This document shows positions 1 to 53,247 of a stretch of 64,000 bases of DNA, one piece after another (position 1 is the first letter of the stretch; each line of letters begins with the position of its first letter). The notes beneath the pieces are model-generated. The model ran no database searches, had not been told where the DNA came from, and worked only from the letters and a program-made list of their open reading frames with translations. The position numbers and the translations under genes are program-made. The DNA is from Selaginella moellendorffii (lineage: Eukaryota; Plantae; Lycopodiophyta): NCBI RefSeq assembly GCF_000143415.4, contig NW_003314348.1, positions 686,062-750,061 on the forward strand, read 5' to 3'.

Positions 1-1679
1 GAGTAGTCACCGCCTGAAGAAAGCCTACTCAAGTCTGATGGATGAGGCTAAGCCTCAGGCTGAGGCAGCCATGCGGAAGAAGTGCCGTGGCCTGCTGTTG
101 GAGAGGAGCAGTGGCAATGACTTCTTCATCTTCAACAACCTGTTCATGAGCTGCTCGATGAGGGGATTCCAGATGCTGGCGATCCAACTGACAATGAATA
201 GTCAGTACCTAGATGCGCTCAAGAGCAAAGCGAGCAGTAGCAGCAGCAGCCTGGCCTTACTCCTCGAGTTCTTGTCGCGCTTCCTTGAGCTCATGTTGGG
301 AGGAATCCTGCTACAGATGAGGGACCTGCGCCTCGTGTTCATACACTGGTGCGCCATGGTGCTGGAGGAAGTGGAGGTTGCCGAGTCCAACATTTGCTGG
401 AAGCACCTCATCGAGCTCTCCACCACGCTTCTCAGCAAGGACGAGGAGAAGCTGTTGCAGCTCCTCTGCAAAACCTGCCACCAATCACCTCCTCCAGGGC
501 ATGCGGGTTGCCCGCATTATGAAGAAAGAACATCAACGCAGACATTAGATCGCATTATGAATGTTTGTTAAGATAGATAAGATTAACTGTTCATGAAGGT
601 CGGAACCCCTCGAGCTATACAAAAAGCTAGGTACTTATTTTGAGGAGTTCTCAATCACCACAAAGCTAAAGAGGTGGCAATATTCCTTCTGGAAGTTACG
701 CGACACTTAACAGGAGGGCTATTGTGTCCATACCATCCTATTGTGTTGCTGAGGTGTTGGTGGATGCTGGGCATCAATGTGTGGTGTGTGTCACTGTTTC
801 CACCTCTTCATAGCAGAGCTGGCAAAGCCGTTCCTCCCGTCGAGACCATTCCCATCATGCAGTCGGTGACCGCCCAGCCGATATGCTGCGATCCTGTGTT
901 TCCATTCCAGGATAACTCAGTTTTGATTTCTTTCAGTGTTCACCATTCAGAGATACCGCACGAATGTCGTAGAGTGATCAGCTCCTTGCAGCAATGCCAT
1001 ATTCAATTTAACATTTGTGAAATGGAAAAACATACGGTGTGGCAAGCATAACTTAGTACTTAAATTCTTTTCTGTTCTTCTTAAAGAATCTATCAATCCA
1101 ATCCAGGCAACAAGCTTTGGAGGCTCCAACATCGATACAAGTGTGTGGTGCTGAAGATTTGTCTCTCGTTTTCTAAGAGAATAGAAAGCTTTACCTTGTT
1201 CTTGATCCTGCAAGAGATACAACATACAGGTAAGAATTAGAGTGCAAAAGGCATGTAAAGCTCTTGAGGAGGATGCGTTTCAGCCCATACTCAAGGTTTC
1301 GCTTGGTGCCAAAGGTAAACAAAAATCTATTAGTCTATTTTGGTGTAAATAATATACCTGGAATATCTAAGCATATTTTAAAATATTCTTCAATCCAAAT
1401 TTTATGTTGTTAAACTCTTCTCTTTGTAATCAATGTTTAATGCTAATAATCTTACTTATGACTAATAGAAGATTTGAGCATGTATTTGTCATGGTTTACA
1501 AGAGAAAAACAACAGCTTATCTTCTTGGCATGTACACTTAAATATATTCACCATATTCTCAAGCTTCCATGCTATCATAGACGGAAGAGAATTTGTCAGC
1601 AATGATGAGATTTGCCATATACTGCAATTGACAACGATGATTGTTCCATTGCCACAACTAGAACTATGAATCAATTCAT

Positions 1680-2300
1680 GATATCAGGGTTATTAACATT
1701 GTTGATTGAATACTAAAAGGATTTTCTTAGCAGAGTGATTTTTCAACTAATGCAGCCAACTTGTTCAAACTCCTTGAGCTCAGCTTGGAAGCATGTTCAA
1801 TCCTCACCTCCACCACCTTAGTCAAAACATCAATAAGATCTAAAGTGCAAATTAATTTATCGAATCAAAGCTTATTGACATTGTTGATTGAATATTGAGT
1901 TGTAGTGGATCCAACATGTTCAATCCTCACCTCCACCACCTTACTCAAATTGTTCCTCACAAAGCCAACTCACCATTCAATTAGGAATGTCAATAAGCCC
2001 TGATTTGATAAATTAATTTGCAATTCTAACATGTTCAATCCCACCCACCAACTTAACATTTAATTAACAATGTCAATAAGCCCTAATTTAGTAAATTAAT
2101 TTGCAATCCCAACATGTTCAATCCTCACCTCCACCATCTTGCTTAAATTTTTCCTCACAACATCAGTAGGATCCATAGCCATTGCAACTCAAATTCAATT
2201 AGCAATATCAATAAGCCCTAATTTAGTACATTAATTTACAATCCCAACATATATAGTCCCACCTCCACCACCTTGTTCAAATCATTTTTCACAACAACAA
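1680..2300. repeat. Degenerate tandem/inverted repeat array, probably a decayed transposon
   Basis: Motif CATGTTCAATCCTCACCTCCACCACC recurs near 1793, 1915, 2030, 2113 and 2250 (last two degenerate). TGCAAATTAATTTATCGAATCAAAGCTTATTGACATT (about 1846-1882) recurs inverted as AATGTCAATAAGCCCTGATTTGATAAATTAATTTGCA (about 1986-2022). The region is AT-rich and CpG-poor. Confidence 0.6.
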
Positions 2301-5059
2301 TAGTCCATAGTCATTACAACAATGCTTTTGGAGGAACTTAGTTAAGTGTATCTCATGAGCCAATAAATTCTTCATCCTCAACAATGGTCTTTAAAATAAC
2401 TTTGGAGTTGTAAAATTCTCACCAATCAATTATACTATTAAACTAATCTTATGATTGGCAACAAGATTATTACTATGCCCCTCTCTTTCAAGGTAAATTG
2501 GCCTGTGTTAGTTTATCAAGTTGTCCCAATAATAGAGTGTGAACTTTGCAGTATTTGTTGAAATCTTTTTAACAACACTACTCACATGACATTAAGGCCT
2601 TTATACACTTCAATTCCTTTTCTCGATCCATCCATTAGTAACTAATTTTCTACCTTGTGAATTGCATAACTTCATTATTAGTTGAATTGTATTAGTTTCA
2701 CGACATTAACCAGGAACTACCCTTGAATGTCAACATAAATCCAAGCTTATCATTTTTGGGAGTTTCTATACAGGGATAGGGACATGCTTGTCCAAATGCT
2801 TTATGCCATGACTTTTCTTATTTTGAGAAGCTAGTGAAGATCTTGGAGGAACAACCACCTAATTTGAAGTTTGAGATAGTTACATTAGCTAAACCATGCA
2901 TTTATCAAAATTGTAATGAAATGGAGAGAACAAATAAACATTTTAAAGAAAAGAGTAAATGTAAAAACAAAAAAAAGGTTTAAGATTATAAAAATTATAA
3001 TAAAACTTAATTTATATCGACATAATTTTCTTAAATAGAATACAAAACAAACCATAGCATAGCAAATTGTTTCTAAACCCTATAAATCACTAAGCAAAAG
3101 ATAAAAGGAGGAGAATAACAATAAGGAGGGATAAATTAGGCCTCACCCCTTTCTTACAGTGATAATGTTTAAATGTTTACAGTGATAGTGTTATTGGAAA
3201 TTTCTTAGGAAAACAAGTGTTTGAGTGTGTGAACTCTAATTATAGTGAGGATTGGAGTGATCTCAATGTAACCCATAGTCAACTGTGGAAACACAATATT
3301 CCTAAACAATTCTTAATAAGGATCTAGTGCTTTGCACTCTCATTATTCATTAGATTCTCACCAAAGTTATTATATGGCAATATGTTATATAACATTTTGT
3401 GGTCTTGTTTTTGGGTAGAATTTCTATTAGGATTGAGATAGTTGGAGGTTGATTTCAAGCCCAATTTGTTCTTTTTCGCTTTTATTGGTCAAGAAATAGC
3501 TTTGTAGTGATTAATCCATGAGAGGAGTAGCTTTGCAGTGGTAGAAAGTATTCACTAAGGTGTATTGTCAAATGGGTTGCAGAGATCTTATCAAAAACAC
3601 ATCACAAACTCTGTTTGTGCCACACATTAGAAACATCCAATATTTCAATATCATTCATTCATTCAAATAGATGTTTATAAAATCACACCACATGCTCATA
3701 CAATTCATACTATAAGTTGTCAATGCACTCCAAGATAGGGAGGTTAGTAGTGATGAATATATACTAGAAAATATTAAAGGCAAAGTTGGTTTTTTTTTTA
3801 CATCCCACAAATAAAACTCTTGTCTTGAAGACCCTAATAACATTCCAACTTGCTCTCTATCACATTATGTTCAGAAGCATTGTCACTCTTAATACATTCA
3901 GACTGTATATGTGTTGAAAATTGCATGGTGGTTGATAGCTTGCAAGTGACTATGCCCCACATATCAAAGTGTGAATGTAGAATCTATATGATACAAACTT
4001 GCAATATGCTACCACATAAAATGTTTAAGTCTTCATAATTACAATGAAATTTACTCATAGTTCATATGCCATAACTCACATTAGTGTAAATCTGTCTTCA
4101 AATTTGAGATAGATGCCTCTATTATAGCTTTGCTAGATCATGCATTGCTAATGCTTTGTGAACTTACTGTTAGCTGAATTTATATTTTATTGTTTGATAA
4201 CTATATTGGAAGTTGATAATACCAGCACTATTTATAGCTATGTTAGTTCATACTTGACTGAATACCTCCTCTGTTGGTACTCTATTATATAGACCCTTCC
4301 AATGCATCTAGACTAGCAAATCCTCTAAAAGTCTTGAATGTTTGAGAAATTAAAAAATTACAGATATGAGTGTGAAATTTCTGATTACAGGCAAAACATT
4401 GTCCTCCACCACTTCTTCCATATTGTGAAACCACTTTCAGAAGCAGAGGACAAAATGTTATTTGCCTCCTCATGTAGTGTTTCACATAGCTATTTGAGTT
4501 TACTCATTGAATTGTACACTAGCAAATCCTCTTGTTTGCCTCTCTGAATGCTTGTCAACACCTTATCTCCATGTTTTTGGACTCAACAACATATGCTCAC
4601 CATATAGTGTGTGCCTTATGTAACCCAAGACCCATCCTAGCATCACGTCTGGCATGACAAAAACTTATGATTCATGGATACCATGAATGCATGTGGCATC
4701 CATGCATAGGTTCTATGACTCATGGTTTCTTATAAAGAGACGTCTGTGTATATATTTCTCTAACATCCAATTAGAAATTAACACAATTTGGTGCAATTTA
4801 CAAATTGCACTTCATATTTAGGAGTATTTTGATGAAAAATTTGGCATTGCCTGTTTGATGTAAGCATATACCCTTCCTTTGCTCTTGATATAATGCTATT
4901 ATCATGGTTAAAATACATGCTCTATCCTTGACAAAAGAAACTAAAGACATTTCCACTGGTGGTGAATATCCCAAGCTTCAGAAGTGAGTAGAATGTCCAA
5001 GAATGTCGGTAGAGTTGTCTGTGTGTCTAGGTTCTTACATTGAGCTTTTTTTTATGCAG

Positions 5060-35898: not shown

Positions 35899-37569
35899 TC
35901 ACCGCAGCGAGTACATGCTAGAGAGCATCACATACGGCGTTCCATCCTCGGGTTCTAGCTCCGCCACAAGCCGGGCAGCTCTGTGACCCTGTTCGTCCAT
36001 CCCCTCCACTTGGGTCTTGCAAGCGCTCAGCAAGTGCATCCACGAGTAAACATCCGGCTCGAATGGCATCGCCGCCATGAGCTCCTCCGCCGCCACCAGC
36101 CTCCCGGATCGTCCCAGCATGTCCACCATGCAAGCGTAGTGCTCCATCTGGGCTTCCACTCCAAAGTCTCCCACGCCAAGCTGGAAGTAAGCTCGGCCGC
36201 CGTGAACCCGCCCGGCGTGGTTGCAAGCGCACAGCACGCTCACCAGCGTCACCTCGTCCGGGCTCACGCCTTCGAGCGCCATGGCGTGGAAGAGCTCCAG
36301 AGCTTGCCTCCCGAGCCCCTGCTGCGCGTAGCTCGCGATCATCGCAGTCCAGGATACCGCGTCCTGCGTGTGGAGCCGCTCGAGCACCGCGCGAGCCTCG
36401 CGCAGGCTGCCGCATTTCCCATACATGCTGATGAGCGAGCTCTCGACTTTGGAGTGGTAGAGCACAGAGCCACTCTCGGCGATGGCGGCGTGGACCATCC
36501 TTCCATCGCTAACCGAGGCCAAGTCGCCGCAGGCCTCGAGCGCGCTGATGAACGCGACTTCGTCTGGCCTCTCGCCCTCCAGGATCATCCTCCGGAAGGT
36601 GACGAGCGCCTCGTCGAACTCGCGGTTCCGGCAGCACGACGAGAGCATCACCGTCCAGGACACCACGTCCCGCCGCTTCATCCTCTCGAAAGTCTCTCTC
36701 GCGTCGGCCAGGCTCTGGCACTTACCGTACATGTTGACGAGCGAGTTCTCCACCGCGAGCTCGCCGGTGAATCCGAGCTGGGCGATGCTGGAGTGGATCT
36801 CTCGGCCTCTGGCCAAGCTTCCCAAGTTGGCGCACGCATCCAAGCCCCCCGTGATCGTCACTGCGTCGCCCCTGACGCCTTCTAAGTCCATGACGCCGAA
36901 GAGCCTCAGTGCCTCGGCCGAGTCTTCGTTTCTCACGTAGGCCGCGATGAGAGCGTTCCAGGACACCACATTCCTCACGGGCATCTTGTTGAAAAACTCT
37001 TTCGCTTCTTGCAAATGCCCGTGTTGGGCATAAGCCGTCACCATGGAGTTCCAAGTCACGACGCTTCTCTCGCCCATCTCGTCAAACAAGTCGCGAGCTT
37101 TCTGGAGATGGCCTTTTTGGGCATACGCGGCGATCATGGTATTCCACGAAGCAGCGTTTTTCCTCGGCATCTTATCGAACATACTTCTCGCCGTGTCCAT
37201 ATCCCCTCTCTGGGTATAAGCCGCGATCATGGTGTTCCAGGTCACTTCACATCTCTCGGTGGCAGCATCAAAGAGTTCCCTGGCACCTTGAAGATGGTGG
37301 CTCCTCACATAAGCGGCGATGATCATGTTCCACGTATAGAGGTTCCTGTGTCTCGGCCCGGTGCCATCGAACACTTCTTTGGCGTCCTTGAGGCTTCCAC
37401 ACTTGCCATACATCTCGATCAAGAGGTTTCGCAGGAAGCCGTTCTTGTCGAGGCCGGCAGTAGCGATTTCAGCGTGGACACGCTTGCCTTCTTCCAAGTT
37501 TTTGGAGCTCCCACACTTTCGCAGGAGGGGAGCGTAGTGATCCAAGTCGTGAGGGCTGATCGAGATCAT
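35899..37569 (-). CDS. PLS-class PPR protein with E domain
   Basis: Tandem WNTMIAAY short repeats, MYGKCG units, and EHYACMVDMLGRSGRL...MPFEPDVYSWMHLLSAC. Confidence 0.92.
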   Translation of the reverse strand: MISISPHDLDHYAPLLRKCGSSKNLEEGKRVHAEIATAGLDKNGFLRNLLIEMYGKCGSLKDAKEVFDGTGPRHRNLYTWNMIIAAYVRSHHLQGARELFDAATERCEVTWNTMIAAYTQRGDMDTARSMFDKMPRKNAASWNTMIAAYAQKGHLQKARDLFDEMGERSVVTWNSMVTAYAQHGHLQEAKEFFNKMPVRNVVSWNALIAAYVRNEDSAEALRLFGVMDLEGVRGDAVTITGGLDACANLGSLARGREIHSSIAQLGFTGELAVENSLVNMYGKCQSLADARETFERMKRRDVVSWTVMLSSCCRNREFDEALVTFRRMILEGERPDEVAFISALEACGDLASVSDGRMVHAAIAESGSVLYHSKVESSLISMYGKCGSLREARAVLERLHTQDAVSWTAMIASYAQQGLGRQALELFHAMALEGVSPDEVTLVSVLCACNHAGRVHGGRAYFQLGVGDFGVEAQMEHYACMVDMLGRSGRLVAAEELMAAMPFEPDVYSWMHLLSACKTQVEGMDEQGHRAARLVAELEPEDGTPYVMLSSMYSLR

Positions 37570-43224: not shown

Positions 43225-44470
43225 TTTTACACTTAAAAGCTTCGATGTGAAAGACCTCCATCAGCGACTGCATCTTTCGCAGAGATGGCAAGCTTCGTGA
43301 CATTGTCCCTCCACATTTGGCCTGCTTCTCCCATCATATCCTTCACTGCCTTTTCAACGATCGTGGCATCTGGACTCGGTGGCAAGCGAGAGCCGATCTT
43401 CCAATGCTCCACAGCAAGCACACAGTTAAGTGGCTGCTCGTACAAGAAAGGCCATCTAATCACGGAGACTCCAAGCACGAACGATCGTCTCCAAAAAGAG
43501 AATTCCATCCACAATGAGTGAGAAACGCACCCACGGAACGATGCTTGAGAACCTGTGTGGACGACATATTAAGCAAGAAAAAGAGGTAAAAGAAGAAGCT
43601 TACCTTGAGCTGAGAAGCCCAGGAAACAAACTTGCATTTGTCATAACTTGGGTCTTAGAAAAGCTTTCGAAGCTCATTGTTGTCTGATCCTATCACCCAG
43701 GCTTCCAAAGGAGATGTAGATGACTGATTTGGACGGCTGCTCGTCCAACCAGTCGAGGCAGCTCATATCTTCCATCCAAAAACCACACCTCTCCTGCTCG
43801 AGTTCGTACACTCCAACCTGGCCGTCGAATGCAAATGACGGAAGCAATTGACCGATTGGAACAAACTGTGGAGTGTCTCTAGCAAGTTGGTCGAGCTGAG
43901 ATGTTTCCAACTCGTAGAAAGAGTTTATAAACACCAGTATACCGGAGAGTGAAGTTGGGATCTACAGCGTGAACTTCTTGAAGATGCAAAGGAAATTCCC
44001 GTCCAGAAATTGGAGGGAGGCCGGGTACGAAATCTATGATCCTCGAAGGAATAATAAAAACTCAGAGGAATAGATTAAATTACCTTTTAGCGACAGGAGT
44101 CCATTTTCCTTGAGCACAAGAAGACCATTCTGGATGCTAAGCCACGAAGCAGAAAATGTTGAAAGAGTCACCTTGCAAATCAGGAACTGGCGAGCGACGC
44201 CTTGAAGGCTAGTAATTGCCAAGTCGATGCACTCTAGGCAGAGAATCATCTACCATGATATCTCAAATAATCTTGGGCACCGCCAGTTTGAGATTCTTCT
44301 CCAAGATAGCAGCAAACTGGAGTGGAACCGTAGTGACGGAGAAGGCTTCTGGAATGAAGGCATCCTGTAAGTCGACAAATCTCAAGTGCTGACTAGTAGC
44401 TTGTTGCTCAGTAGCTATAAAAGTCTCCCTTTTGTTTGAGATTAAGAAAGTGATGATGAAAAAATCCATA
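43225..44470 (-). pseudogene. UGT pseudogene (copy 5)
   Basis: Frameshifted UGT pieces (NKRETFIATEQQ, FINSFYELETSQL, HWKIGSRLPPSPD) with the start missing. Confidence 0.88.
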
Positions 44471-45122
44471 TAAAATCAAATTTATTCTCCTTTTCAATCT
44501 CAATTGCATTTTTTTCTTGCCATGTCATTGTCAATTAAAGAGTGTGTCATTCAAGACTACTTCCAATATTACCTTTTCATCTTCTAAGGGTAGAAGTATT
44601 AAGTAATATGCTAGTCTATCCATTCTTATATATAAGTAATAAACCCCAAGTAATATATCTATTATCATACCATTCCTATCTACTTTTGGTAAAAAAAATG
44701 GCAATGCAATGTAGTTTTCTTTTTAATAGTGTAATGCTTGCTATGCTTATAAGAGCAATGAAGTTTAGGACTTGAAATTTTCTATCACAATTTTCAAGTA
44801 TATATGAAAAATCTAGCAAGAGCTTAGAGATTATGTTAAGGGATAAGACTCTAGTAGGAAATTATATGGTAGTTCTAATAGTTAGACTGCTTTTCTTACT
44901 TGCACGATACATCTATTGGTTATTATTTAATTAGCAACTTGAAGAACAAATAGTCTTATTTAATTAGCAACTTGAAGAACAAATAGTCTAGCCTTTCTTT
45001 CTAACATATTATTGTCTATTAATACATGAGTTTTTATTTTTCCAGTTGAGTTGGGATCCCTACTAGTAATAATAATATGGGAAGATAGATTTTGTAAAAG
45101 ATGGAGAAAAGATTAAAATCTT

Positions 45123-45560
45123 CATAGATATGGGTTCAAAGAAAAACTAATATAATCTTTATCTACTTTATGAAATCTACTAATATATGCTCAATTTTAC
45201 TAATTACACCCAAAAACATTTGTTGTAAACTACCCCCACCTTTAAAGCTAACACCTTGAATGAAAGTTATTATTATTAACAAAAATATTCTTATATTCAA
45301 GATGTGTGGTTTTTGAATCATATTTGTTTTTATTAAATTTATTATTTAGTGTTTCAAATAATAACATTTCAACATATATTTATATCTTTTTCCCAATCCA
45401 CTTAAACGTTTTTTATTAGTAACTAAAGAGAAATTCAGACAAATATATTCATACTTTGTTCATATGTAAGTTAAATATATATTTGGATGAGCTTACTCAT
45501 ATAATTTGAAATTTATGTGATACAGCTTTAGTCTAGTTAAATTAATTTATTTTTGCCTTA
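45123..45560 (-). pseudogene. Decayed tandem paralog of the AT-rich secreted-protein gene
   Basis: Minus-strand remnants in the same order as 45789-46245: ETLNNKFNKNKYDSKT, QGVSFKGGGS, N*AYISRFHKVDKDYISF and LNPYL. Stops and frameshifts are present. Confidence 0.7.
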
Positions 45561-45788
45561 TAAGTAAATATAAGGCAAAAAATGTATGTGCTTAGGATAA
45601 AACTTTTACTGTAAATTTATTTTTCTTTTGATTTATTTTAACTCATTTAAAAATAAATTTGACTACTTACTTTATAAACTTATAATGGAAAGTGCATTAT
45701 CAGTTAAGGTTTTCTAAAACAAATTAAAAATTATAATTATGTATTTGACACTAGAACTCACTAGTTTTATTTTTAAAGTAGACTATTA

Positions 45789-46245
45789 TTATTTCCATGG
45801 ATATGGATTTAAATCTAGATTATCAAAAATAATATACCCATTATTTATTCTATGTGTTCTACCAGTATATGCCCAATTTTGCCAACCATACCATGAACCT
45901 TTTGTTATAAATTCTCCTTCACCTCTGAATATTACACCTTGAAATTTAATAGAGTTAATTAAAATATCTTGACATTCTTGGTACGTTTTTCTATCATAAT
46001 ATTTTTTATCAAATTGATCATTTAATGTTTCTCTCCAAATAATAGAATTTCCATATAAATTACAGCTATTTAAAGCATTTAGCATATCTGGTTTCCAATT
46101 AACTAAAAACAAAATTACTACAAATGAAAAAAAAATCAAATATATACATACTTGGTTTACTTGTTAAGTTGAATAAATTTGCTGATGAGCTTACTAATAT
46201 AATTTTAATTAAAAGAATAAAAATAATTACTAATTTAGTTGCCAT
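45789..46245 (-). CDS. Small secreted protein of unknown function in an AT-rich island (2 exons, about 135 aa)
   Basis: Exon 1 (46245-46152) is signal-peptide-like: MATKLVIIFILLIKIILVSSSA. A 49-nt GT-AG intron (46151-46103) joins it in frame to ORF 45789-46139, ending FRGEGEFITKGSWYGWQNWAYTGRTHRINNGYIIFDNLDLNPYPWK. Confidence 0.7.
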
Positions 46246-46457
46246 TGTATATACTAGAATTTAATTCTAAAAAATTCATTTTAAATACTAAATAGCCAAA
46301 TTTCTTTTTCTGAGTTTCCAATTTCTTTTTCAGAGTTTCCAATGAAGTCAAGTAAAATTAAATAAATTAATTCTCTCCTATATCCTAAGCATAACGTATA
46401 TTTTTACAAAAAATTGTTTTAAAAAAGGAGTCAATTCTATATTTTTTTTGCCATAAA

Positions 46458-49400
46458 TCACGAGCTTGCTGTTGGTTTTCCAACGCTGTGCTCCATTTTC
46501 ACCCTTAATGCCTTCCTCCTCGCTAGAAAACCTCTTGCTGCTGCTTGTATTCTCGTGGCTGCGGTGACGCGTGATGGCTCCTCGTGCTGCTCGACTTGCT
46601 GTATGGTTCGTTTTGCTACAAATCTCGCAGCTCGTTGTATCTTTGTTGCTGCGATGTGGTTTTGCCACGGTGTTGCTTGAATTCGTATGCCCGAAGCACC
46701 GTAGTCTGCATGTTTTTGCTCCTGTCGAACTTGTAGTCTCAGTAAATATCTCCTCGTAGCTACTTGTATCTTTCTGGCCGCGATAACTTCCAGTTCTTGT
46801 GCCTTGTGAGCCTGTTCTTGTTCGTGTTTTTGCCTCGCTGCTTTCTTTCTTGCCAGAAACCCCCTTGCGACTGCCTGAATTTTAGTGGCCGCCTCAACTT
46901 CTTCTAGCTTTTCCATTCCTCCAGTGGCTGCTCTCTCCTTGGCCAGCTTTCCCCTTACAAACGCTTGAATCTTTTTGGCAGCGGTTTCTTCTCGCTCGTG
47001 CTTCTGGAAGCTACCCCGACTGGCTTTTGCTGCTTTCCTCCTCGCTATAAACCCCCTCGCAAGGGCTTGCATTTTAGTGGCTGCCTGAGCTTCTTTTGAG
47101 TTCTGTTGCTCTTGCTCCTGGTTTTGGCCTTCACTGCCTCTGGCAAATCTCCTCCTCACCAAAAATCCCCTCACAAGAGCTTCGATTTTCGTGGCGGCAC
47201 CACGTATGTAAACGCTTTGGATTTGCTTCTCTCTCTCAATTCGTAGTGTAAGAGGTAGACCCTGCGATCAGAGCACACAACACTCTTTGAGAGAGATTGA
47301 GAGGAAGATAAGAACATAAAACTCTCAACTGTTGGTCCGATCTTGTACAACGTGAACGTTTCCAGAAGCTGCTTGAATGGAATTCCTTTGTTTGGAACTC
47401 GAAAGCTCATAACCTCAAACTCAATCCTCAAGTACCTGGACGAGAAGCGGCAAAATAAATGAAAGCCTCTGATTGGCCAGCTTACCATTGCACGGTGGAG
47501 TTGTGTCGTCGTCCCAGAGGAACACCCAGAGCGTTCACAAAGTTTCGAAGTTTGTGCATTCCAATGTATCCCGAAGCTCTGCATTTTAGAAAAAAGATAA
47601 AATGAGAAAGGTTAAAGACCACATTTCTTACTCTGGATCGAAGGGCTGCTGAGCCCATAGCGCTTTAAATGCAAGCAGGTGTTCAGGCGAGACCATAGAA
47701 TTCTCGTTAACCAGCCCGAAAGTGATGGCATCCAGGATCAAGGCTACGAACAAGTTCATGAATATGAAACTCGATATCACCACTAGGCATACGAAATAGA
47801 TGACTCCAGCAAACGGATGACCACAGTCATTCCTCGCTAAAGAGTCTCCCTTTGTACACTTTGGCGAGTCCACCATCACGTCGACCATGATGCAAGACCA
47901 GTTGTCAAGCGTAGAAACCTGCAGCATAAGCTCTGATTAGAACACAAGCAACTGTATCGAAGCTTACTTGGAAGACGGTAATGAAGGAGTTGACGAACGT
48001 TCGAAAGTTAAGCGTGGGACCAATACAGGTTCCTTCTGCGACATGACTAAACATCTGGAAGCCAATACCAGAGAACGCGAACAGGAAGACACCGAGAAGA
48101 ACCATGATCTCTCCCATAGTCGGCAGGCATATGACCATAGTTCTCATGATCACCCGTGCTCTCGGTACATGAGGAATGATGCAGAAAACTCGAGCAATGT
48201 AAGCAAATCGACAAACATAGCCTCTAGGCGTTCCTTTCTTTCCCATCAAGCCTGAAGCTGCCAATATAGATATTGCTGCTTCCATGTGTTTGGAGTGCTC
48301 GTATTTGTAAACTTCGAACTGCAAACACACACTTGAAACTCAAGCATTTATCTAAGAACGCACAGACCTCATCACCAAGAAATTTGATCAAGGACTCCAA
48401 TAAAAAATACGTTGTAAGAGCAACGTGAGCTTTCTGGCGGCGCATAGAAACATAAGCCGGCTGGCCAGCGTAGTTCGTTGACAAGAGTGCAGCGTATCCC
48501 AGCAGGCATATTATCATACTGTTTTGGTAGTGACGATTGCGGATAGCGTAAAAACATAGCTGCCGGACGTAATTCTTCGGTGGCCTCGGTAGCTTTGACG
48601 GTTCCAGCTTCTGGATGATGCGATTCATGTCTCGCCAGAGCTTCTGTCTCTCCGTTAGGAGCTTGGAGCCCGAGTTCTTCCCAAACTCGTTGATAAAAAC
48701 TCCAATAAACACCCGGACTATGAAAAATCCTCCACATATGCAAAACGCCACGAAGAAAATGGCATAAGCCGGACTGTTGTCCCGTTGCGGCTGCTTGTTT
48801 TCGCCAACGATATCCATCACGGGGTATAGCCAGTTTGTAACCCAGTTGTCGAAAGTCGAGCAAACGAATAAAGAGAGGAAGGCATTACCAATGCTGTCAA
48901 AGTGGAAAGTAGGATTTGTCCAGGCCCGTGGAACATATATTCCGATGTTGTTGTAGTAATGGCCAGTGCAATAAGCTCGATGAGTAATAGTAGCATCGTT
49001 GCACGAGTAAAGAAGGCCCCTGAATAACTGGACACCGATAGAGCCAAAAACCACGAAGATGAGGAACGTAAACAACAGAACGGCCACTATAGCTGGAACA
49101 GTCTTGACGAGATTCGACATCAAGCTTTTGAGTTCGCCAAAGCGACAGATGAACCGAAATGGTCGCAGTGCCGTCAATGCATGTATAGCTCGTCGAGAGT
49201 TCTCGCTCCAAGTAGCAAGATTGAGTGCGTCGATGATCAGAAGAGAAAGTTCCAGGATGTTGTAGGGGTCGTTAAAGACTGCACTGGGCGAAGATACGAA
49301 GCCTTGAACAAAAACTCTGAGAGAAAACTCCAGGAGGAAGACCTGCGAAAGACCCGTGTGTAATGTGAAGTTCACAAACACGGAGAGAAACATACTAACC

Positions 49401-52400
49401 ACGAACACAAGCTTGTGGAGAACTTTGATAGCCGTGTCGGCAAATACCGGCTCTCCAGTGGCTCGCATCTCAATAACAAGCCAAGTGCTTATAGCGACCC
49501 AAGCGATTGAGAACCAGCGCCACCATCTGCTGTTTAAAACCATCTTGCAAAATCCTGTCGCACGACCCTCTTCTCCAAGAAAAGATCTTTGCCTCTCGAG
49601 AGTGGGAAAGCTTTCCTCAAGTGCCTCGTAGTCTGAAAGTTGGAAGGACTCCTTTTTCCGGCGTCTGTCTAGATTTCTAGCTAGCTTGCTAGATACCTTG
49701 AAAGGAGGCCTGGTGATGTCAGCAAGCGTAAGAACAGCATCCTGAAGCGCAGTTCGCGAACCTCTTTTCTCACCAATGTCTGCTGGAAATCCAGAAGCCT
49801 GGAGAATCTGTGAACCACGACTGATCCTTTGCGGCCTTTCTGTTTCTGTAATGTTCTCTCCCACAGCTGCAGTCGACACTGCCTCCGAGCCATCTCTAGC
49901 ACTCTCTGCTGGCTCAGAAGCTGCTCCTGGAAGCAAACTCGTGTTGTCATATCCCAGTTCCAGGTTTCCGTCAATCTGTCTGCCCCGTCGAGAATGAAAG
50001 CCTGCTTTCACTCGCTCAAAAGCGTTCATCACCCAGCTACCTCTTCCCGTAGAGGCCCGATTTTGCATGCGCTTGAACATTCTCATGTGCTCGGTCTGCA
50101 GGAGAAAAGTTGTGGAGAGAGAAAACAAGGTTTGGAAAATGCACGAACCCGCTGTATTTTCTTTTTCTCGTTGTCTGTAAGCTCGTTATGCTCTAGTATA
50201 ACAGCAATGATAAGGTTCATAATGATATGGACTGTGAGGACGAAGTAAAATATATACAGAAAAGGCGCCACACCACTGCACGTAACAACGATGAAAACGA
50301 TTTGTCAAGAAAGATAGATGTAGCTTACTTATACTCCACCCCGGGCCTCATGGAGTTCCACATTTGATTTGGCCAGGATTCAGCAGTAGTTACCGAGAAC
50401 CAAAGAAGCATAGTCTGGAGCATATTATCGTGGTGTCCGCGAGGGTACCCGTCCGTGAACTTATAGTATTGACCACTGTATAACTCCATGCTCACGATAG
50501 AAAATATAACGATAACTAGCAGGTAAAAGAAGAACACACCCACCAGTGAGCCAACACTTTTGATGCACGTGGCCTGTAAAAAGTAGATTAGCTGATATAT
50601 TACCTTCGAAGAAAGAAGGCTGACCACAACTGAAGAATGTTTGTCGACATGTTTCTTGGACAAGTAGAACCACCGCATGATTCGAACTGCGGAGATATTT
50701 GGATACGCCCGTGAGATTAGTGCTCCAGAAGATACCGCGATTACGAAGAGATCAAACAGGTTCATCCCTGCAAAACTATTCACAGCTCAGATTTGAGGAA
50801 CTGAAACTTTCGCTTACTGTCAGCCATAAATGAAATTGGTCCGTAAGCAAGAAAACGCAATAGTAATTCTGCTGCAAACAAAACAAGGAGCACCGCTTGA
50901 ATACCATCTGTGCACTGACGTTAAGGTGTACGGTCACAAGGAAAAGACGAGGCTGATGGATACAAAGTGTGTACAAGAACTCCTTAGACATGCCGTATCT
51001 GTACAAACATAAGATAATCGCGTTAACAGTAACAGCCAGTAGTACACCGCGATCAAAACTTGGATGCTGAACAACTGCGCGGCATTTCTCGGATACTGAT
51101 AAGGCTGCTCTGCCACCTCTTCCACTTAATGAACGTTGATAAGTTCTTGAGCCCAATCGGCTGAATCTCATGGAGCTAGTGTGAAAGGTATCTCGAAAAG
51201 TCGAGTGAGTGCGGCTAAAAATTCGGCCGACACTTCTTTTAATTCTCCTGGATCTGTTTAGAAATCGCAAATGCCATTTCAAATGACGATCATCAGTTAT
51301 AATGTCGTCCCGGAGGATGTTCGCCATCACGGTTGCGCTATAAAAGGAGGTCGTGCTTTTACGAGATTTTTTCAAGAGTGCCTAAGAATATTGAATCCCG
51401 CTTAGTGTTTCCAGTGATAAAACCGTCACGTACCTGATGTTCCGCCCTGACTCGAAGAAAAACTCCACTTATCCCAGCAATAAACACATTGCAAAGAAAA
51501 TATGTCCCAATAATCACCAAAGTCATGAAGTATGAATCTGTAAAGCAGTGTCAGGCAGAATTGACCTCGCCAAAGTAAATCTAATACTTGCTCGTTCTCC
51601 TTCAGCATCCTTTACGCGGTACATTATCAGAGACCATCCTTCCAGCGATACAATCTGGAAAAGAGCTACAACATAAAGCACAAGGTGAAAGGCAACGAAC
51701 CTGAAACATACTGATCAAAGAATACCAGAGGTAATCAAAACTCGTTTGTCCATAGTTAGGATTTCCATACTTCTGCAAATGCAAAGTTGTATGATGAAAA
51801 CTGCGAACGGCGGAACTTTACCAAGCATTTCTGAGTCGAGGGACAACTGTATCCATCGACTACTTTCTTATCACAAAAACGTTCTGGATATGATAGTTGC
51901 TTGTCCTGACTTCGCAAGCACCTAACAGAAATGGGAAGTTCAGCTTAGTGGTGCAATATGCAAAATTTAATTGAGTACCTTTGAGACAATGTCTTTTGCA
52001 AAAACTGTGTCCCGAGCAGCGCATAGAAGACCAACATGAAAAATGTGAGGAGGATAACATTTTGAAGCGGACGGACACTTCTTTCGACTGCTACCATAAT
52101 AGCCTGCACAGCATAGCAGTTTCAGTTCAAAGCTAGAAAAGAAAAGAAAAACATACAATGACATCTGCAAAAAAATGGATGTGCTTCAAAGCTAGAAGGC
52201 CTCGAAATGCACGCAAGACCGCCAAACGTGCAAAATAATCTCTTCCAGTTATGCTTCTAACGATAATGTGTACCCTGTAGCATAGAGATTATGATACGCT
52301 CATGAAGCTAGGAATCTTACCAGGAATCAATAACAATGGCAAAATCAAGCCTGTTATAAGGGTTTCGAAGGTAAGAGTAAGGTCCCTTGCAGAACCCCAG

Positions 52401-53247
52401 ACAGAGGATCTTCAGTAACATTTCGATCCTGTTAAGAAAGCTTTAACGATGAGACAGTTCCATGTAACTTGCAAAAGAAAAACTTACGCATAAAGCGTGG
52501 TAATGACCCCATCCAGAAAGTCCAGCTTAAAATCCCTTACATCGGTCCATCGTTGTTCCCGGCTCCCAGCTTTTACTTGGAAAATCAGCACTAAAAGGTG
52601 AGATAGGATGAGGAATAGCAGCATATATTCCGCTGTCCTGGAAACAAATGTAGCACAAGGTTGTCATAGCTGGATCAGCAAATACAAGGTAGTTTGTTTA
52701 CTTGCATACTGGTTATGGATAAGCACGAAGAGCTTTAGACGCGTTGCGCTGTATTGACTCCAAAACCCAAGGGCACGACCCTCGATTCGAGCTCCAGTTC
52801 CTACAGCGCTACGCATTGCCTTCCTTCTCAGCAGCTGATAAAAGAAAGAAAAATCTTAAGCCGAGAAGAAGAAAGGAAATGTGTAGCGCTTACCAGCATA
52901 TGCCTGACTGCTTTATAAGCTCTTTTCCAATTTTCCATGGGCATGGAAGAGACTGGCGGGCGTGGAAGAATTTCCAGAGCAGCAATCAACGCGACAGTAG
53001 AAGGCTTTTGCCCATCGTCTGGTTTGTTCACGCCATGGATAGGAGGGAGCTGATCCTCCCATCGAGGATTCCGAGCTAGGAAATCTGGATCATCCTCTGG
53101 ATCTCTTTCGCTGCGCAGCAAATTCCAAAATCTAGACAAGATTTCCATACGAAAGACCGGCGCTTACTTCTGCATGAGCTGAGAGATAGTCTTGGAAGCC
53201 ACCTCGAGCATCCGAGAGAGCCTCGCGCTCTTGCGCGTCTCCTCCAT
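46458..53247 (-). CDS. Four-domain voltage-gated Ca2+ channel alpha-1-like protein with a multi-IQ C-terminus
   Basis: Four 6-TM repeats with pore loops VSLEGW, TTAESW, STFDNW and STLDNW. Other motifs: FHFDSIGNAFLSLF, FIFMNLFVALILD and HLLAFKALWAQQPFDPE. The IQ exon is joined in phase (KIGPT|GLPLTLR). Confidence 0.9.

Follow-up and report, generated by a model that had tools for sequence, protein, structure and literature searches.

Does an AT-rich island in the genome of the lycophyte Selaginella moellendorffii, with what looks like a gene for a secreted protein of microbial type, represent DNA of foreign origin or native plant DNA that has decayed in place? The island lies in a stretch of 64,000 nucleotides (contig NW_003314348.1, positions 686,062 to 750,061; referred to here as the window), and positions below are those of the window unless a locus or scaffold is named. 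An earlier note, made from the letters of the window, had taken the divergent composition, together with an intron and a signal peptide, to suggest a domesticated horizontally acquired gene or a fast-evolving protein of the defence type.

An AT-rich island contains an unannotated two-exon gene

The extreme AT-richness that had been noticed at this locus was borne out. GC content reaches its minimum for the 64-kb window at 44.5–46.4 kb, where 500-nt windows contain 20–29% GC compared to 45–50% on both flanks; overall, GC is 24% in the island and 47% in the whole window. The observed/expected ratio of CpG (CpG o/e) is 0.14–0.17 in the island and in gene A, compared to 0.86–0.94 in the flanking genes. 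The island is bordered by the stop codon of a four-domain channel gene (46458–46460) and, at its other end, by the next annotated gene, which starts at 44249 (Table 1).

Table 1 Features of the AT-rich island and its surroundings, in window coordinates
Feature	Position	Strand	Remarks
Single-exon PPR gene	35902–37569	minus	exact match on scaffold GL377652.1
AT-rich, CpG-depleted intergenic island	44450–46457	.	GC 20–29%; CpG o/e 0.14–0.17
Perfect 33-nt tandem duplication	44923–44988	.	left, more decayed part of the island; repeat family D2
Tandem copy B, pseudogene of gene A	45143–45510	-	in-frame stop codons plus six indels
Exon 2 of gene A, mature YvgO-like domain	45789–46102	-	103 in-frame codons from 46100, plus stop at 45789–45791
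Intron of gene A, 49 nt, GT–AG, phase 1	46103–46151	-	donor GT 46151–46150; acceptor AG 46104–46103
Exon 1 of gene A (ATG and putative signal peptide)	46152–46245	-	31 codons plus 1 base
21-nt tandem repeat, two copies	46299–46340	.	54–95 nt upstream of the gene A ATG; repeat family D9
Four-domain ion-channel gene, right-hand neighbour	46458–53247		GCA_000143415.2 annotation

Within the island we identified gene A, a minus-strand gene of two exons with its ATG at 46245–46243. The product of exon 1 consists of MATK, a 14-residue hydrophobic core and SSSA, an n–h–c layout from which a signal peptide is predicted. The earlier claim that such an exon splices in frame to a stop-free exon agrees with our reconstruction: the two exons join in frame across a GT–AG phase-1 intron, exon 2 is free of stops until its terminal one, and the tail that had been quoted is present, with the frame continuing for 11 further residues before the stop. 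Stop-free runs in the island reach a maximum length of 124 codons. Among 2,000 dinucleotide-preserving shuffles of the island, the longest run averaged 67 codons (s.d. 14) and a length of 124 was reached in 0.35% (p ~0.0035).

No gene is called in the island in the GenBank annotation of GL377652.1 (GCA_000143415.2). The exon 2 product, or anything with at least 90% likeness to it, was absent from a collection of 15 billion proteins that includes RefSeq and Logan assemblies, and a look-up of the product of the ATG-started ORF in exon 2 returned no record. Gene A is probably a real gene that the current annotation misses. Just 213 nt separate its ATG from the stop codon of the channel gene, so the channel 3′ untranslated region and the gene A promoter must overlap or abut; given this gap, it is uncertain that gene A has a promoter of its own. 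A scan of the locus for bacterial promoters and terminators is uninformative in a plant.

A dead tandem copy lies next to gene A

A second copy, designated copy B, is located ~690 nt downstream of gene A on the same strand and shares 66% nucleotide identity with it over 396 nt (E = 4e-26). The duplication is also visible as the collinear repeat families D1, D3, D4, D8 and D11. Copy B is a pseudogene, with one of its stops replacing the Trp of the N-W core. Its lesions are common to both haplotypes of the locus, which places the death of copy B before the haplotype split. GC at codon positions 1, 2 and 3 of copy B is 28, 25 and 13%, the same pattern as in gene A, which indicates that the ancestor of the two copies was already AT-rich while still coding. 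Similarity between gene A and copy B is equal at all three codon positions (72%) and adds no support for or against constraint. A six-frame HMM scan of the window recovered gene A and fragments of copy B, and no further copy.

Gene A is intact on both haplotypes

The second haplotype was reached through the allelic PPR protein. Its scaffold, GL377684.1 (locus L005), contains this island too, flanked by the same genes, and the gene A allele at about L005:1126–1581 retains the ATG, both splice sites, the reading frame and the stop codon. Because island and gene A are found on the scaffolds of both haplotypes, they are neither an assembly artefact nor a contaminant; that the island might be an assembly contaminant, an outcome the earlier note had allowed for, was thereby dismissed.

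Between the haplotypes, the coding sequence of gene A differs at 14 of 408 sites (3.4%), compared to 6.2% for the nearby non-coding DNA and the pseudogene (Fisher p 0.04). Counted on in-frame codons, exon by exon, these amount to 7.5 non-synonymous and 6.5 synonymous differences, with an allelic pN/pS of 0.27 (p 0.03); both tests of selection thus draw on a total of 14 differences, and their significance is only marginal. The sole difference in exon 1 is synonymous. On haplotype 2, a glycine that is invariant in the family has been replaced by Asp. Of the 22 columns that do not vary among its six relatives in the family alignment, gene A retains 19; at the 64 other aligned columns, it has the majority residue in 13.

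For exon 2 alone, GC at codon positions 1, 2 and 3 is 32, 34 and 12.6%, respectively (p 1e-4 for the GC1/GC2 excess). With GC3 so far below GC1 and GC2, the drift towards A+T has been much stronger at synonymous sites, so the drift of gene A occurred under constraint at the level of the protein. Overall, gene A has probably been constrained, and our assessment leans towards a gene that is still functional.

Divergence between the haplotypes is uneven across the island, amounting to 13% with 195 gap columns at 44470–45142 and to 5–7% elsewhere. The spacer between gene A and copy B contains a 106-nt haplotype indel.

The closest relatives of gene A are in Selaginella and ferns

Database searches and the structure model were based on the exon 2 product. 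A word-indexed protein search with this product gave no hit. A phmmer search against 1.84 billion representatives gave five hits, two of which were credible: the S. moellendorffii protein XP_024534696.1 (LOC112347667, with allele LOC112351200; E = 3e-8) and KP509_15G045600 of Ceratopteris richardii (E = 1.6e-5). Both proteins have 111 residues, and the alignment spans residues 1–91, nearly the whole exon. The other three hits (P0001, P0004 and P0005) were long repeat proteins in which a short Y-G-N-x-I-V-W-x-D motif was matched repeatedly, and were judged spurious. Profile searches added Adiantum L7F22_006840, Adiantum capillus-veneris GOP47_0001366 and a fern-like protein from metagenomes. 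Gene A is 34–40% identical to the members of this plant YvgO-like family, with direct similarity over the mature domain, and almost certainly belongs to it.

The Selaginella paralog LOC112347667 (L002:10001–10379) has 46% GC and a GC3 of 61%. Its gene contains a 43-nt phase-1 intron right after the signal peptide, as does gene A, so that in both Selaginella members a phase-1 intron separates the signal-peptide exon from the mature domain, immediately ahead of the conserved Trp. The two proteins also share two cysteines and a four-residue insertion, both of which are missing in ferns, and they form a clade opposite the ferns with support values of 91/96 in a small tree and 98/90 in a large one. 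The shared intron position, cysteines and insertion, together with the tree, point to vertical descent and an old duplication inside the Selaginella lineage. Gene A has 24% GC compared to the 46% of the paralog, lacks an annotation and has a dead tandem copy as its neighbour. Its product also extends 11 residues further at the C terminus than those of its plant relatives, and its core motif contains one additional Ser.

Among plants, single-sequence phmmer and word-limited profile searches returned relatives from Selaginella and ferns, and none from seed plants. The impression that the protein does not come from a known seed-plant family thus matched what these searches returned. A scan of viral contigs gave no relative, nor did a scan of metagenomes with the plant motif, and tblastn against plasmids returned noise. 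The two cyanobacterial hits from a scan of bacterial genomes with the same motif were due to chance and lie in unrelated ORFs, one of which encodes a 1128-residue protein.

The fern-like metagenome member is encoded on short, eukaryote-looking contigs (L003:567–821 and L004:331–585) from several environmental metagenomes and one Logan run. It groups with Ceratopteris in the tree and is probably fern DNA present in the samples.

An R-[RQ]-[LI]-L-Q motif precedes the mature domain in four fern proteins (P0003, P0008, P0010 and P0011) and in the Selaginella paralog (P0002). In the longer fern proteins P0008, P0010 and P0011, it follows the signal peptide and a spacer of 20–40 residues, a position that suggests a pro-peptide. 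The motif falls inside the signal peptide in the Selaginella paralog and is absent from gene A.

The plant family is remotely homologous to microbial YvgO and DUF7888 proteins

The earlier note had pointed to a GDGG..NWAF signature of small microbial proteins. To recover its bearers, the back-translated signature GDGG-x2-NWA[FY]-x-G was scanned over metagenome contigs and matched at least 120 loci. ORFs surrounding these matches encode a coherent set of related proteins, ~120–210 residues long and with export signals. One product (L051:1388–1927) corresponds, residue for residue, to a 'stress protein' of the Bacillus cereus group, and its 90% cluster includes 'Stress response protein YvgO' and 'Antifungal protein' E6Y8N2_BACTU. 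Further signature proteins with the same names came from B. pumilus, Priestia and Dolichospermum, giving a bacterial range for YvgO of the B. cereus group, B. pumilus, Priestia and cyanobacteria. A second microbial subgroup, with GDGG..NWAY, reaches the Pfam family PF25411 (DUF7888), the L013 protein matching with E = 1.6e-6 and 28.1 bits. The signature is that of a real microbial family, to which the plant proteins proved to be remote homologs by profile–profile comparison.

When the seven plant sequences were compared to 19 YvgO-type sequences with hhalign, the alignment covered 106 columns, corresponding to the whole mature domain of ~100 residues, with a probability of 97.7% and E = 1.6e-12. 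As the microbial set had been collected with a motif that is partly shared by the plant family, the 12 motif columns were removed from both alignments, after which the match persisted at 92.5% and E = 5e-7. The segment N-terminal of the motif gave E = 7e-5 by itself. Control comparisons with reversed and column-shuffled plant alignments gave E values of 0.014–0.6. The plant family also matched the DUF7888-type set (96%, E = 4.9e-9), a likeness weaker than that to the YvgO type, and the two microbial sets matched each other at 99.4%.

The homology is restricted to this level of comparison. Pfam and NCBIfam scans of exon 2 and of five or six relatives gave no match, even at E = 10, and gene A therefore falls outside DUF7888 as delimited by its gathering threshold of 27 bits, to which it is related at the profile–profile level only. 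With YvgO, the plant family shares a small size, an N-terminal export signal and the blocks N-[VI]-M-[VI], G-V, F-x-G-x-F and N-W-A-[FY]-x-G-x-[FY]-x-R ... V-x-F. Identity between the two is ~18%, however, and the plant genes contain a spliceosomal intron; the cysteine pair of gene A and its Selaginella paralog is a further difference. The core GDGG-x2-NWAF-x-G, invariant in YvgO, is altered in plants, where NWA[YF]-x-G is kept but GDGG is replaced by G-W-Y-G, or by G-S-W-Y-G in gene A. Because of this replacement, the plant proteins are best described as a divergent sister family within the same superfamily and not as members of YvgO.

In a joint tree, a long branch sets the plant clade (support 100/98) apart from both microbial groups, in neither of which it is nested; the microbial sample, collected through a single motif, is incomplete and biased towards it. 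Remote homology is confirmed at the level of sequence profiles, and the plant family would represent a divergent branch of the YvgO/DUF7888 superfamily in seed-free vascular plants. Our literature search found no paper tying YvgO or DUF7888 to plants.

On one metagenomic contig (L059:738–2551), three YvgO-type genes follow one another, two of which form a divergent pair, indicating that tandem expansion has taken place in the microbial family too.

Predicted fold and candidate function

An AlphaFold model based on the seven-sequence alignment (pLDDT 78, pTM 0.70) consists of an N-terminal helix followed by eight strands; a single-sequence model (pLDDT 45) was unusable. The mature protein of ~110 residues would thus be built from a helix packed on a β sheet, with its most conserved segment, a Trp/Tyr-rich stretch, aligned with the GDGG..NWAF core of YvgO. 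Foldseek comparison of the seven-sequence model gave no match at E = 0.001 or better in the PDB, and none in the viral models of BFVD. The best VIA-align score, to monooxygenase effector proteins (Z = 4.0), is below the tool's own noise level.

Several candidate assignments were discarded. Sequence hits in the PDB (CSE4, GFP, crystallins and nanobodies) were noise; those to β/γ-crystallins had E values of 0.5–2.6 and disappeared with the family profile, and no crystallin emerged from the fold searches. A GH28 or right-handed β-helix assignment proposed by the ESM Atlas (0.93, with 134 of 256 features shared) was incompatible with the helix-and-sheet model and was not accompanied by a Pfam match, and a second ESM Atlas query yielded no lead. 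GOP47_0001366 is named 'S-protein homolog' in UniRef, although neither this Adiantum protein (P0011) nor other members match PF05938 (Self-incomp_S1) or any other Pfam family at E values up to 10; it appears to have been given this name in error.

The one functional lead comes from the microbial side. YvgO of B. thuringiensis SF361 is listed in two reviews (PMC8703302 and PMC9755354) as a proteinaceous antifungal whose mechanism is not known. By homology with this protein, the most likely role of gene A would be extracellular defence, antifungal or otherwise antimicrobial. This assignment is taken over from a relative with which identity is 18%, and we regard it as tentative and rather unlikely to hold in this specific form. 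As a working model, held with similarly low confidence, gene A may encode a secreted defence protein in which the conserved Trp/Tyr-rich segment serves as the active surface.

Origin of gene A and of the island composition

We consider it most probable, at about 0.6, that gene A is an unannotated paralog in a family of secreted lycophyte and fern proteins that forms a branch of the YvgO/DUF7888 superfamily. Exon 1 would supply the protein with a cleavable signal peptide. The 2-kb island that holds gene A and its dead twin appears to have lost almost all of its CpG and most of its G+C, the likeliest cause being that a silenced or repeat-like segment was subject to cytosine methylation and deamination over a long time; selection would have retained the protein of gene A while A+T at its synonymous sites rose to 87%. 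Prolonged cytosine methylation and deamination deplete both CpG and overall G+C, and in the published methylomes of S. moellendorffii, it is mainly repeats and transposons that are methylated, with gene bodies largely unaffected. The losses in the island lead us to read it as a silenced, repeat-like segment, consistent with its tandem duplication, and its decay was probably driven by methylation. Comparable CpG loss (CpG o/e 0.13) was found at window positions 1001–5000, a gene-free AT-rich block, which argues that the composition of the island reflects local decay and not the recent arrival of foreign DNA.

A recent horizontal acquisition of the island from an AT-rich microbe, protist or giant virus would account for the gap between 24% GC and the 47% of the window, and a GC3 of 12.6% does resemble genes of AT-rich genomes; the distant relatives of the family are, moreover, microbial. 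Its nearest relatives, however, are the Selaginella paralog and fern proteins, with no microbe among them, and the paralog shares the position of the phase-1 intron and the Selaginella clade with gene A at a GC content of 46%. Plant-type relatives were not found in the viral, bacterial-genome or metagenome scans, the model had no viral fold match, and the gene-free block of the same window is equally depleted in CpG. We therefore consider a recent transfer highly improbable, and the earlier view of AT-rich composition as a mark of foreign origin was not upheld. A transfer at a much greater depth, from bacteria or fungi to an early ancestor of vascular plants, with gene A as a later vertical duplicate, is compatible with the paralog reading and deserves serious if tentative consideration: within plants, a lycophyte and ferns were the sole sources of family members, and the only other relatives are abundant microbial families. 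Against it, the plant clade branches deeply outside the two microbial groups instead of within one; no donor can be named, and the comparison draws on an incomplete microbial sample picked by one motif and on an absence from other plants that reflects single-sequence phmmer and word-limited profile searches.

The decay that probably explains the composition could also have overtaken the gene itself. Gene A may be a silenced paralog, recently dead or never expressed, that is decaying in heterochromatin with its frame not yet hit. That it is unannotated, that its product is absent from all protein collections searched, that its tandem twin is dead and that the surrounding CpG depletion is of the kind expected of methylated silent DNA all fit such a relic, as do the Gly to Asp change at an invariant position on haplotype 2 and the marginal selection statistics. 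A relic is nevertheless difficult to reconcile with an open frame of 124 codons at 24% GC, which arose in only 0.35% of shuffles, and with an ATG, splice sites and stop kept on both haplotypes despite 3.4% divergence. The 19 of 22 invariant residues retained, the pN/pS of 0.27 and a GC3 far under GC1 and GC2, hence drift under protein constraint, argue in the same direction, and we judge a relic to be possible but unlikely. The paralog reading, with a protein maintained by selection in decaying surroundings, is the one that we adopt.

Implications and comparison with fungal AT-rich compartments

If gene A is what we propose, a native gene can reach 13% GC3 and yet keep its protein, and extreme AT-richness in S. 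moellendorffii is an unreliable flag of foreign DNA. The current annotation would be missing a real gene, and a plant family now listed as hypothetical would gain a name and a testable function, the one studied member of its superfamily being antifungal.

The island invites comparison with the genome of the fungus Leptosphaeria maculans, which reportedly contains RIP isochores, AT-rich and repeat-derived compartments that hold genes for secreted proteins. Like these, the island is AT-rich and CpG-poor and would combine a gene for a small secreted protein with a decayed duplicate. It differs in belonging to a plant, in spanning only 2 kb and in having a cause that is deduced from composition, so the likeness is an analogy only; RIP itself is not known in plants. 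A bolder extension would be that S. moellendorffii hides secreted genes of the defence type in methylated, CpG-depleted islands and that its YvgO-like family is an ancient microbial gift, a conjecture that we consider improbable. If it were true, such islands would parallel, in a plant, the 'two-speed' compartments of fungi, combining silencing, tandem birth and death, and fast evolution, and their genes might be active only during an attack or in certain tissues.

Two other stretches of the window may contain repeat-derived DNA. The gene-free block at 1001–5000 has ~33% GC and a TpG/CpA o/e of 1.37, extends over 4 kb without an ORF of 70 codons or more, and looks like decayed, formerly methylated repeat DNA. 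At the left border of the island, positions 44201–44468 are 77% identical to part of a UDP-glycosyltransferase gene (L005:20356–20630) situated ~17 kb off on the allelic scaffold, and a further piece of 45 nt is 96% identical to L005:14900–14944. These matches suggest a fragment derived from a UDP-glycosyltransferase gene, or a repeat, at the island edge.
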